Of a stretch of 64,000 nucleotides of DNA, positions 8,468 through 58,449 are shown piece after piece. The notes under the pieces are model-generated. The model ran no database searches. It saw only the letters and a list, made by a program, of their open reading frames with translations, and had not been told where the DNA came from. Within the stretch, counting starts at the first letter, position 1. Each line of letters begins with the position of its first letter. The stretch is from the sequence record NC_023557.1, one strand, 5' to 3'. The position numbers and the translations under genes are program-made.

Positions 8468-8519
8468 CGGCATATAGGCCCTCCGTTACGGAGGGCCTTT
8501 TATGACATCTTTTTTTTTT
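8468..8519. terminator. Bidirectional terminator at a convergent junction
   Basis: CGGCATAT, 10-bp perfect stem, TTTATGAC, then T10. Confidence 0.8.
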
Positions 8520-8983: not shown

Positions 8984-9538
8984 TTACTTCATACCGTCCA
9001 ACTGCTTTTGAAGTTCCTTTAACTGACGGCTTGCATCCGGCGTCTCGGCGTCATGATCTCTGATCGCTTCAATAAACGACTTTCGTTTGCAATAAGGATA
9101 CTTCATCCATTTATCAAATGACAAACCAAATTTGCCCAAGATATCCGCACGCAGATATTCGAGCTCATACTTTCGATACCCAACTAACGCCAGCGAGTCT
9201 TCCTGCTCGACCTGTAAGATTAACGAGAGCGGCGAGGTTTCCACGTTATGGTCAATAATCCCAAACGTGTCATCGTAAAGCTCTGTTAATCGAATTAGTG
9301 GATACTCCCAGTTCTCGGTAAGAAACGTGGGGTTTTCTAACGCGACATCCCAGGCATCGGACCGATCACTTTCGGACAGACCGAAATCCCAATGGATTAG
9401 ATGTCGGCTTGATCGAACGTCTGATTCAGTGTATTCGTCATTAGGGTAAAAAAAACCCGTGCTACGTTCAGCGGGGTGTACGCAGGGAAGGTGTTGCTCA
9501 CCAGCGGTTGACGCGCCTGGCAGTTCGGGCATTTCCAA
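8984..9538 (-). CDS. Downstream (-1 frame) ORF of a putative frameshifted chaperone pair
   Basis: Overlaps the upstream ORF by 142 nt; no convincing RBS; entered by a -1 slip at 9454-9448. Confidence 0.6.
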   Translation of the reverse strand: MEMPELPGASTAGEQHLPCVHPAERSTGFFYPNDEYTESDVRSSRHLIHWDFGLSESDRSDAWDVALENPTFLTENWEYPLIRLTELYDDTFGIIDHNVETSPLSLILQVEQEDSLALVGYRKYELEYLRADILGKFGLSFDKWMKYPYCKRKSFIEAIRDHDAETPDASRQLKELQKQLDGMK

Positions 9539-11016
9539 CGCGGTACCGCAACCACACCGACCGTTACCCGGTTGATGAACTTGTTCAGCTCTTCAAAGAA
9601 CGGTTTACGCATATCCGGGGTTGCACTGAATTGCTTCAGCAGCAATGCCACGTCATCGGCCGACTCAACATAGTTGCCGTCGTTGAACTCGATCTTGGTC
9701 ACCCAGTGGGCGTAACCGCGCATGGAGGACAGCGCTGCCTGTTTGTTGATGTGCTGCTCACGCTGCTCACGCGTCATGCTGTCGTTGAAGCTGTCGGTGA
9801 TCGCTTGTTGAATGCCGTTGATCCAGGCATAACCCGCTGCATTCTTATCTTCGAGTGATGGCACCCGCAGATAGAACTTCACATCTTTCACAGTGATGAC
9901 ATTGTCTTTCATCACTTCAAAGCCGGTCTGATAGGCAATGACCTGCTCGACGGTACGGCCGCTGAAGTGAGACATGTGCGCACGCTGGGTTGGTGACAGA
10001 CGATTGTTGTCAATGATCGACAGACGAGAGACGTTAACTTTCGCTGCTTCAACATGCACACACTTCTTCGGATCGGCGGCACAGGCAGTAACCATGTGGT
10101 AGCCAGACTTAAAGCGTGCGCCCAGGTAGGCGTTAGCGATCAGATCGAGATCCTGCTCTTTGATTAACGGCAGCAGGGTTTTCTTATCGGAGACACCGAT
10201 GCTGCTGTCAGTAACCATACCCAGCAGGAAGTCGGTCATGTGCTTACGCACCACGACATCCAGGTTGTTAAACACCAGACCGTTGGTACGACGACCGAGG
10301 ATCGCTTTCTCAGCCATGATGGCGGTTTGCATATCTACAAACTCATCATCACCGGCAATCAGCAACGTAACCCAGATACCAGAATGTGGCAGCGGCAGAT
10401 GGACATAGTCGCCCATGTTCATCACACCACGAGCACGCATCACTGCCTGTGGACCGGTCAGCAGTTTAGTGCCTTCGGTACTGCGCTTCACTGGCGGGCG
10501 AGAAACACCCTGCACTTTGTTATTGTCGAGCAGAATACCCTGCAGCCACTGCGCGCCATCTTGACGAATGGTCAGGTTCAGACCAGAACGGTACGACAGG
10601 TTGGTGATGGCGTTACTGGCCAGGGATAGCCAGATCATCGCTTTATCAGCACCGTACAGACTGACGATCTCTTTTAAGATCTTCTTGTCTTCGGTGTTGG
10701 TGTCGATCTCATTGATCAGCGCCGTCGCTGCATCGTAATCCTGATGCATAATAGACAGCACACCTTCCGTGCCGACATCCTCCATGGAATTCAGCTTTTC
10801 AATGATCGGGTTCTGATAGAGCGGATCGAACGCCTGCTCAACGGCTTCAACTTCAGGTGCTTCAGCTTCACCCTGCTGGCCGGTTTCTGCTGGCTCGGGA
10901 TCGGTGCCGATAGTACCAGTAGTCGCCGGACGACCTGGATCAACTTCAGGGATACCAGAGTGGTTTTCTTCAACAGGCTCTTGCTGTGACAGAATGGATG
11001 GGTTATCACCGGACAT
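9397..11016 (-). CDS. Conserved 539-aa protein with Cys motifs; putative tail/baseplate assembly chaperone
   Basis: AAGGA RBS; acidic N-tail; CAADPKKC and CPNC motifs reminiscent of T4 gp26-like chaperones (by eye). Confidence 0.55.
   Translation of the reverse strand: MSGDNPSILSQQEPVEENHSGIPEVDPGRPATTGTIGTDPEPAETGQQGEAEAPEVEAVEQAFDPLYQNPIIEKLNSMEDVGTEGVLSIMHQDYDAATALINEIDTNTEDKKILKEIVSLYGADKAMIWLSLASNAITNLSYRSGLNLTIRQDGAQWLQGILLDNNKVQGVSRPPVKRSTEGTKLLTGPQAVMRARGVMNMGDYVHLPLPHSGIWVTLLIAGDDEFVDMQTAIMAEKAILGRRTNGLVFNNLDVVVRKHMTDFLLGMVTDSSIGVSDKKTLLPLIKEQDLDLIANAYLGARFKSGYHMVTACAADPKKCVHVEAAKVNVSRLSIIDNNRLSPTQRAHMSHFSGRTVEQVIAYQTGFEVMKDNVITVKDVKFYLRVPSLEDKNAAGYAWINGIQQAITDSFNDSMTREQREQHINKQAALSSMRGYAHWVTKIEFNDGNYVESADDVALLLKQFSATPDMRKPFFEELNKFINRVTVGVVAVPRWKCPNCQARQPLVSNTFPAYTPLNVARVFFTLMTNTLNQTFDQADI
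9448..9454 (-). other. Candidate -1 ribosomal frameshift heptamer U-UUU-UUU
   Basis: 0 frame reads GTT TTT TTT ACC (V521-F-F-T); -1 frame reads GGT TTT TTT TAC (G-F-F-Y) of ORF 8984..9538. Confidence 0.55.
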
Positions 11017-11033
11017 TATGCTTATCCTTACCT

Positions 11034-11501
11034 TTACTTTTTAGTGGGGTCGACCTGAACCGGGTCATTGAGTTTGCTTACTGCGCCAGCGGCAACCGCG
11101 TTAGCATGGGCGCTGTCTGACATGGTCAGAATGGCAGCACCGTGACGCTGCATCGCATCCAGCAATTTACTTTGCAGGACGATGTATTGTTCGTGCACAC
11201 TGAGGAAGTCAGCGATGGTGCTGTCATGCAAGGCATAACCGGTTTTGCCTTGATGCTGCTGCTTGATCATCGGCAGTGTTTCATCGATCTCTTTGACTAC
11301 AGCCAGCGCCGCTTCGATGTGCGAGCTTAACGCAGAGGGGTTTGGCTGAAAGCGAATGATGTTGGTGTTGACGGCCATGAGGCAAGTATTGCTCAGCTCA
11401 TTGCGCAAATTAATCGTATAAGTTGCCGCAGAATCCAGGTACTCCCAGAACTGATCGGGCTGATGGACCTCTGGTGCGAGAGGCGGTTCATTGGTTGACA
11501 T
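11034..11501 (-). CDS. Hypothetical helical protein
   Basis: AAGGA RBS; co-oriented with the 539-aa gene. Confidence 0.75.
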   Translation of the reverse strand: MSTNEPPLAPEVHQPDQFWEYLDSAATYTINLRNELSNTCLMAVNTNIIRFQPNPSALSSHIEAALAVVKEIDETLPMIKQQHQGKTGYALHDSTIADFLSVHEQYIVLQSKLLDAMQRHGAAILTMSDSAHANAVAAGAVSKLNDPVQVDPTKK

Positions 11502-20598: not shown

Positions 20599-20649
20599 GC
20601 ATAAGGAGAGGCCTCGCGCCTCTCCTGTTTATGCCGTCTTTTTTTTTTT
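20599..20649. terminator. Bidirectional terminator GCATAA-stem-TTATGCCG-T11
   Basis: AGGAGAGGC/GCCTCTCCT stem at a convergent junction. Confidence 0.8.
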
Positions 20650-58220: not shown

Positions 58221-58289
58221 CGGCATAACCCCCTGAGAGAGAAGCGCAATGCTTCTCTCTCAGGGATGCCTGAATCTCTTTTTTTTTTT
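58221..58289. terminator. Bidirectional terminator CGGCATAA-15-bp stem-ATGCC-T11
   Basis: CCCTGAGAGAGAAGC/GCTTCTCTCTCAGGG perfect stem. Confidence 0.85.
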
Positions 58290-58409: not shown

Positions 58410-58449
58410 AAAAAAAAAAGGAGGAAGCAGCTTATCCAGTTACTTCCTC
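58410..58449 (-). terminator. Canonical terminator of the helicase gene
   Basis: GAGGAAG/CTTCCTC stem plus T10 on the minus strand. Confidence 0.65.

Follow-up and report, generated by a model that had tools for sequence, protein, structure and literature searches.

A probable programmed −1 frameshift at an all-U heptamer in core gene cg18 of Erwinia phage Ea35-70 and its Chimalliviridae relatives

Programmed −1 frameshifting is known in phage assembly genes, and the closest described layouts to the one considered here are those of the tail assembly genes G/GT of lambda and E/E+E' of P2, in which the shift occurs near the 3' end of the upstream open reading frame (ORF). In lambda, the non-structural tail assembly factor exists as an abundant short form and as a less frequent one prolonged at its C-terminus, the two having their N-terminal part in common, and this arrangement is conserved despite sequence divergence. 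Gene 10A/10B of T7 (reviewed in PMC5009743) is another morphogenesis gene with a −1 shift near its end, producing a minority C-terminal extension from a U-rich site with no classical nearby stimulator, and Escherichia coli dnaX yields its gamma and tau isoforms by tandem −1 slippage on a homopolymeric X_XXY_YYZ heptamer, in this case truncating the product with the help of an upstream Shine-Dalgarno-like element and a downstream hairpin. The present work concerns gene Ea357_263 of Erwinia phage Ea35-70 (Agricanvirus, a nucleus-forming jumbo phage), carried by a 64,000-nt stretch of record NC_023557.1 that matches the phage with 100% identity and is called the window hereafter. Ea357_263 is the Chimalliviridae core gene cg18, that is phiKZ gp77, 201phi2-1 gp136, RAY gp267 and Goslar gp081. 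A programmed −1 frameshift at a run of U near its 3' end, leading to a predicted long form of ~677 amino acids (aa), is the best explanation of the comparative sequence data and is held here with good confidence.

With respect to these systems, cg18 resembles lambda G/GT in layout and is not a member of its family; its probable place is a divergent one within the T4 gp26/gp51 family. As in lambda and P2, the shift deduced from the sequence lies near the 3' end of the upstream ORF, and, as in lambda, an abundant short form and a rarer extended form with a common N-terminal part are predicted, in an arrangement kept across divergent sequences; an assembly role comparable to that of G/GT would be a further likeness. 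In contrast, the common part of cg18 comprises ~540 aa against ~100–150 aa in lambda G/GT-type chaperones, the gene does not lie between tube and tape-measure genes, its slip site is an all-U heptamer without evident stimulator, and comparisons by sequence, profile and fold with Pfam, PHROG and PDB matched it to none of the tail-assembly-chaperone families. The parallel with lambda G/GT and P2 E/E' drawn in an original prediction from the sequence of this locus thus stands for the layout and fails for family membership (no match, a 539-aa protein, a different gene context), and the likeness it perceived between the downstream peptide and T segments was not confirmed by any Pfam, annotated PHROG or PDB match. 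The T7 case shares with cg18 the position of the shift, the minority extension, the U-rich site and the lack of a classical nearby stimulator, but its product is a capsid protein with no sequence kinship to cg18. Tandem slippage on a homopolymeric heptamer and the resulting two isoforms are common to dnaX and cg18, whereas neither of the two dnaX helper elements was found for cg18, no systematic scan having been made for the upstream Shine-Dalgarno-like one.

On the minus strand of the window, on which all coordinates of the site are given, the sequence reads ...CGG GTT TTT TTT ACC CTA ATG..., with a run of 8 T at 9448-9455. The corresponding features are the following.

9397-11016, minus strand: 0-frame gene Ea357_263, 539 aa plus stop, present in the ORF list, in the GenBank annotation and in phrog_4585.
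9448-9454, minus strand: slippery heptamer T_TTT_TTT in X_XXY_YYZ phase (codons GTT TTT TTT), in phase and inside the 8-T run.
8984-9448, minus strand: −1 extension of 154 codons and a stop, which a slipped ribosome would read.
9397-9447, minus strand: dual-coding overlap, in which the short form ends (its last 16 codons and stop) and the extension begins (its first 17 codons).
9244-9396, minus strand: start-less stretch (extension residues 18-68), with no ATG/GTG/TTG upstream in frame after the site.

The in-phase heptamer is indeed followed by 16 sense codons and the 0-frame stop, as first proposed, and an open −1 frame extends from 9592 to 8984. Slippage would give 523 + 154 = 677 residues, the length originally announced for the fusion, and the only ATG/GTG/TTG codons in this frame before the site are TTG 9538 and ATG 9532, the two starts inside the upstream gene that had been pointed out; the first one after the site is a GTG located 153 nt beyond the 0-frame stop. 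Among the five runs of at least seven T found on both strands of the window, the heptamer run alone lies inside an open frame of at least 100 codons. The 0 and −1 frames were translated and searched separately, with no joined-frame sequence.

According to the proposed mechanism, most ribosomes would read GTT TTT TTT ACC in frame and terminate 16 codons further on, releasing the 539-aa protein, and a fraction of them would move back one base on U_UUU_UUU, both Phe-tRNAs re-pairing to UUU. The slipped ribosomes would then translate 154 more codons, giving a protein of ~677 aa composed of the first 523 residues of the short form and of a conserved, mostly helical C-terminal domain. We infer both the ribosomal nature of the shift and the joint action of the two isoforms, and a low-efficiency shift with a fixed ratio of products is likely.

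Conservation of the site was assessed in 119 loci, 25 of them curated (about 20 clades, the identity of whose upstream proteins falls to roughly 16–20%) and 94 from IMG/VR, the search for related loci relying on three narrower alignments. An in-phase T_TTT_TTN (N = T, C or G) is found at the same Phe-Phe motif in 24 of the 25 curated loci, including those of phiKZ/KTN4, 201phi2-1, the SPN3US-like SPFM4, PCH45, RSL2, RP12, Moabite, Wellington, Vibrio phage BONAISHI and Halocynthia phage JM-2012, the sole exception being Psa21 with A_TTT_TTT. The IMG/VR loci comprise 71 with T_TTT_TTN, 18 with N_TTT_TTN and another first base, and 5 with an in-phase T_TTT only. Every locus (119/119) has a homolog of the extension in the −1 frame, its ORF being already open ahead of the 0-frame stop; in the 89 IMG/VR loci with N_TTT_TTN, the −1 ORF extends 143–181 codons beyond the site, and all 89 peptides match a hidden Markov model (HMM) of the extension. 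The codon that provides the first T always ends in T in the curated set, although the amino acid that it specifies varies among six (V, A, T, G, Y, L). Given the codon usage of each gene, a T-ending preceding codon would be expected by chance with a probability of ~4e-11 over 19 clades, and TTT as first Phe codon in all 19 clades with a probability of ~1e-10, both values being rough as the sampled loci share phylogeny. For comparison, UUUUUUU is generally avoided in enterobacterial genes (PMC4066793). The slippery site and the −1 overlap are kept among the sampled loci with no conserved downstream start, and the claim of a programmed −1 frameshift onto a start-less ORF gains strong comparative support from site conservation and selection. 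The putative frameshift is a family-wide feature, phiKZ included, and is not peculiar to Ea35-70.

Could the −1 frame be reached by another route? The main rival to a ribosomal shift is transcriptional slippage, in which the phage or host RNA polymerase would add one U, so that a subset of the mRNAs would encode the long form in a single frame, with the same protein products. Such a process would find a homopolymer of 7–9 T in most loci, it has been named as a possible reason for the avoidance of UUUUUUU in genes (PMC4066793), and Chimalliviridae possess their own divergent multisubunit RNA polymerases; the failure to find a ribosomal stimulator at the cg18 site also speaks for it. However, 20 of the 89 IMG/VR loci scored for run length have only 5–6 T and an intact −1 ORF in all cases, as do BONAISHI and the T4-like phages S-WAM1, LPCS28 and OLIVR5 considered below, and the last base of the heptamer varies (T, C, G) with the X_XXY_YY phase being kept, which fits tRNA re-pairing over run length. 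Tandem slippage of two Phe-tRNAs is the process that fits this conserved phase and free last base, and transcriptional slippage is accordingly regarded as improbable.

Several observations indicate that the programmed frameshift would give access to a genuine coding sequence. Divergence at the three codon positions of the start-less stretch (0.32/0.26/0.55) is close to that of the upstream gene (0.31/0.27/0.56), with a ratio of nonsynonymous to synonymous changes (dN/dS) of 0.05–0.25, and by these sequence comparisons the stretch appears to evolve as coding sequence under purifying selection. The extension aligns family-wide, and tblastn alignments of the peptide encoded after the site with SA002, pEa_SNUABM_48 and Proteus phage 10 start at its residue 1, within the upstream gene. 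In four metagenomic relatives (L007-L010), a −1-frame stop stands immediately 5' of the run, so that upstream entry into that frame is impossible in these loci. In Ea35-70, AH06 and phiKZ/KTN4, the sequence after the site offers no possible start codon before the conserved domain has begun (+153, +204 and +219 nt past the stop, respectively), and independent initiation is therefore unable to explain Ea35-70, AH06 and phiKZ.

The short form seems to be a real product as well, since its 0-frame tail shows conservation, with residues T524, L525 and I539 unchanged throughout alignment A1, and can be aligned with the C-termini of distant homologs; the end of phrog_4585 coincides with the end of the short form. 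In addition, third-position divergence in the 0 frame falls from 0.56 upstream to 0.40 in the 16-codon overlap, which is what dual coding predicts.

A 16-nt block, GCCGACATCTAATCCA (window 9393-9408, minus strand), spans the 0-frame stop and is identical in 7 of 9 phages (alignment A5, columns 46-61), among which are SA002 and pEa_SNUABM_48, whose proteins are ~40% identical to those of Ea35-70. Dual coding explains part of this conservation, and an extra role at the RNA level may contribute to it.

The second alternative is that of two genes, the downstream ORF being translated alone from a nearby or non-canonical start, or by reinitiation, and the T run reflecting only the Phe-Phe motif. An ATG, GTG or TTG does occur within 60 nt past the stop in 56 of the 89 IMG/VR loci (at or before the stop in 3 of these), a ribosome-binding site is annotated in Moabite, gp135 of 201phi2-1 and ORF254 of RP12 overlap the upstream stop, and the database entries retrieved with the extension as query are all short stand-alone calls, with no single-frame fusion among 1.84 billion representatives. 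Nevertheless, a start buried in the conserved domain (Ea35-70, AH06, phiKZ/KTN4), purifying selection on codons that precede any possible start, homology beginning at the slip site, and a −1 relation with an ORF opening before the stop in the whole sample all argue for entry by frameshifting, as do the T preceding the Phe codons, far commoner than codon usage predicts, and the lack of conservation of the CTG start proposed in GenBank. Translation of the downstream ORF as a separate gene is thus considered quite unlikely. As for an artefact, either a homopolymer miscall splitting an ordinary 677-aa gene or a decaying pseudogene, it is scarcely credible even though homopolymers are error-prone in some sequencing chemistries, because run lengths of 5–9 T all keep the same frame relation in over 100 genomes and metagenomic contigs of independent assembly, which excludes the assembly error (A9 instead of A8) envisaged at the outset, and because the 0-frame tail is conserved up to C-termini shared with distant homologs and with phrog_4585, and both frames are under selection.

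Programmed frameshifting nevertheless has to be weighed against a number of less favorable observations. No conserved stimulatory RNA structure was found 5–9 nt downstream of the heptamer, and per-locus folds of the 75 nt that follow it are unremarkable, with z-scores mostly between −1 and 0. Two small secondary structures lie further downstream.

9380-9408, minus strand: weak stem (CCGA...UCGG) across the 0-frame stop, beginning 40 nt past the heptamer and conserved in the Agricanvirus-like group only.
9370-9386, minus strand: TTTCGG/CCGAAA hairpin, 62 nt past the heptamer, missing in AH06 and other relatives.

The stem (RNAalifold energy of −6.2 kcal/mol, 1 of 8 pairs compensatory) is of doubtful relevance, its sequence being kept mainly through dual coding. 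The hairpin reported earlier does exist, but its distance and lack of conservation do not suit the stimulatory role suggested for it, and on the basis of the per-locus and alifold results a downstream stimulatory structure, this hairpin included, was rejected. Low-level shifting is possible without a stimulator. The heptamer U_UUU_UUU is also a weaker shifter than A_AAA_AAG in E. coli (PMC5009743). At the protein level, gp266 and gp267 are not listed in the consulted passages on the RAY/Deimos-Minion lysate proteomics (PMC6690015), and gp136 of 201phi2-1 bears no mass-spectrometry flag in its record. As regards the sequences themselves, the full heptamer is missing in 23 of the 94 IMG/VR loci, conservation of the Phe-Phe motif as protein means that coding accounts for part of the T run, and an ATG or GTG stands shortly past the 0-frame stop in many clades (RP12, RSL2, PCH45, Moabite). 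In clades with a start just past the stop, independent translation of the downstream ORF is possible, and may coexist with the shift.

Lineages with a degraded heptamer are represented by Psa21 (A_TTT_TTT; L024:2680-2760) and by loci L110, L115, L116, L118 and L123, in which only T_TTT is left (e.g. GTT TTT ACC, CTT TTT ATT). They retain the −1 extension ORF, with an ATG 27–60 nt past the stop in most, and frameshifting may there be giving way to independent initiation.

What the two products do may be approached through their likeness to the baseplate-hub assembly chaperones gp26 and gp51 of T4, both of which belong to PF12322 and are both listed as hub assembly chaperones (PMC3004832). Comparison of the cg18 alignment with a 10-member gp26/gp51 alignment by hhalign gave a moderate probability of 70.8% (E-value 3.8e-5, 190 columns), cg18 residues ~229-506 being aligned with gp26 residues 10-202, i.e. 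nearly the whole of gp26, and the pairs C312/C319 and C496/C499 with the Cys pairs of gp26. The gp26 family also ends in a Phe-Phe motif. Outside the cg18 family itself, Foldseek searches of BFVD returned at least nine proteins whose names are baseplate hub subunit, gp51-like or baseplate hub assembly protein (E-values of 1e-6 to 2e-2), with a template modelling score of about 0.5–0.6 normalised to the target, for a query model whose mean predicted local distance difference test score (pLDDT) is 51, and some depositors label cg18 homologs with similar baseplate hub names. The resemblance of the upstream Cys motifs to gp26, originally noticed by eye, thus receives moderate support from both the profile alignment (including the two Cys pairs) and Foldseek, and none from a direct PF12322 match. 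Remote homology between cg18 and gp26/gp51 is probable but not established, and the proposal that the common part of cg18 is a remote relative of these assembly chaperones is put at about an even chance.

In the segment with residues C312, C319, H321, C496 and C499 (window 9523-10083, minus strand), the four Cys, in two distant pairs, are conserved family-wide and align with the Cys pairs of T4 gp26, which suggests a structural zinc site common to the cg18 and gp26 families.

The proposed kinship is tempered by the quality of the data on which the functional link draws, the model being of low confidence (pLDDT 51) and the probability given by hhalign moderate, and by the lack of any PF12322 match at E ≤ 1 in a Pfam scan of 15 cg18 members. 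The AlphaFold2 model of the 539-aa protein was obtained from 12 sequences, and that of the extension, from 5 sequences, had a pLDDT of 47, too poor for searching. Profile phrog_150 reached one member of the cg18 family at an E-value of 0.26, below threshold, hhalign against a single T4 gp26 or gp51 sequence aligned only the CxxC stretch, and Foldseek against PDB gave nothing below an E-value of 0.4. Pfam scans of the 539-aa protein and of the extension assigned no family, the PHROG matches were all of unknown function, and no chain of the solved phiKZ or Goslar virion structures matches cg18. Matches to PDB entries obtained with phmmer and hmmsearch (WD-repeat designs, eIF2B) were rejected as spurious. 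Under this probable remote homology, cg18 and gp26/gp51 would have in common two Cys pairs, a C-terminal Phe-Phe, absence from the solved virion models and two related products, which are predicted in the case of cg18; T4 gene 26 has in addition an annotated internal product, 26'. On the other hand, T4 relies on two paralogs and reads TTC TTT in place of the heptamer, cg18 carries ~230 extra N-terminal residues, and its extension measures ~150 aa against ~45–65 aa, with no detectable relationship to the gp51 tail. If the kinship with gp26/gp51 holds, the short and long isoforms of cg18 would act as an assembly factor in a fixed ratio, in the manner of lambda G/GT.

A comparable heptamer is found in some T4-like phages. 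Cyanophage S-WAM1, Cronobacter phage LPCS28 and Agrobacterium phage OLIVR5 carry an in-phase T_TTT_TTC at the gp26-like Phe-Phe, 2–3 codons before the stop, and the segments bearing the heptamer and the −1 tail in these gp26-family genes are as follows.

OLIVR5, L039:816-971: heptamer and −1 tail.
S-WAM1, L043:1824-2027: heptamer and −1 tail.
LPCS28, L042:1908-2087: heptamer and −1 tail.

The −1 frame runs for 65 codons in S-WAM1 and 57 in LPCS28, that of OLIVR5 being seen in part only; in the first two, it fills an unannotated gap and ends exactly where the next large gene starts. The three −1 peptides are homologous to one another from their first residue and match phrog_634 ('baseplate hub assembly catalyst'), the S-WAM1 peptide also matching positions 236-276 of phrog_150, and an HMM built from the three matches residues 202-244 of T4 gp51. 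Since T4 gp26 spans positions 14-235 of phrog_150 and gp51 positions 13-280, gp51 looks like the core and the −1 tail joined in a single frame, and gp26 like the short form. T4 thus appears to encode both forms as separate paralogs, gp26 as the short one and gp51 with the tail in frame. The heptamer is missing in T4 itself, KIT01, an Acinetobacter phage and FL38. In LPCS28, the gp26-like gene lies between a tube-family gene and a gene for a 610-aa protein, which is the classical chaperone position.

Taken further, these comparisons lead to a tentative proposal, rated at somewhat less than an even chance, that the −1 frameshift is ancestral to the whole gp26/gp51 (PF12322) family and common to T4-like phages (Kyanoviridae, some Straboviridae, Pootjesviridae) and nucleus-forming jumbo phages. 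For contractile tails of the T4 type, the family would then fill the place of lambda G/GT, which has long stood empty, and T4 would be derived, duplication into gp26 and gp51 having replaced recoding. The Chimalliviridae extension shows no significant match to T4 gp51 or to the T4-like −1 tails by HMM or hhalign, and a motif likeness perceived by eye between them is unconfirmed.

The identity of Ea357_263 is well supported, its product matching phrog_4585 over its full length (E-value 5.5e-189), and homologs of its family are found by tblastn in 217 phage records; the record of 201phi2-1 describes its counterpart as 'similar to phiKZ gp77', which supports the assignment to cg18. Chimalliviridae have roughly 70 core genes, among which cg18 appears only as a 'hypothetical protein' in the core-gene table of Prichard et al. 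2023 (PMC10299810 supplement). The name 'gp77' in the Goslar paper designates another protein, which is a capsid decorator. In Chimalliviridae, cg18 is flanked by gp78, gp79 and the virion-RNA-polymerase beta' gene on one side and by small ORFs and a helicase gene on the other; a head-protein gene is also among its neighbors, and it lies outside any tail module. Its immediate surroundings in the window are the following.

11034-11501, minus strand: upstream neighbor Ea357_264, 155 aa, counterpart of phiKZ gp78 by position and synteny.
8984-9379, minus strand: GenBank coding sequence Ea357_262, with the CTG start as deposited.

The latter is read here as a truncated call of the −1 extension, as its CTG at 9379 is not kept in relatives and conserved coding sequence extends upstream of it. 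Counterpart downstream genes in other records likewise have internal Met, Leu or Val starts and are truncated (68 aa for AH06_283, 80 aa for KTN4_102), and unannotated gaps of ~200 nt precede them.

No earlier description of this frameshift was found in the literature on phiKZ gp76/gp77, Chimalliviridae and gp26/gp51, in agreement with the initial statement of novelty, most subscription journals lying outside this coverage; the cg18 case appears to be new and is unannotated in every record examined. If it is true, the downstream gene is wrongly annotated or cut short in phiKZ, 201phi2-1, RAY, Goslar and all other genomes of the family, and each of them encodes a protein of ~680 aa that has gone unnoticed. 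It would also open a way to the role of this core gene, whose product is probably an assembly factor of the tail or baseplate hub that comes in two versions, and suggest why T4 has two paralogous hub 'chaperones'. An all-U slip site would moreover have been retained for a very long time without an obvious stimulator.

The other four long T runs of the window, of 10–11 T each, lie outside open frames of at least 100 codons, at 8510-8519 (plus strand), 20639-20649 (plus strand), 58279-58289 (plus strand) and 58410-58419 (minus strand), and may be terminator or promoter-associated tracts of Ea35-70.

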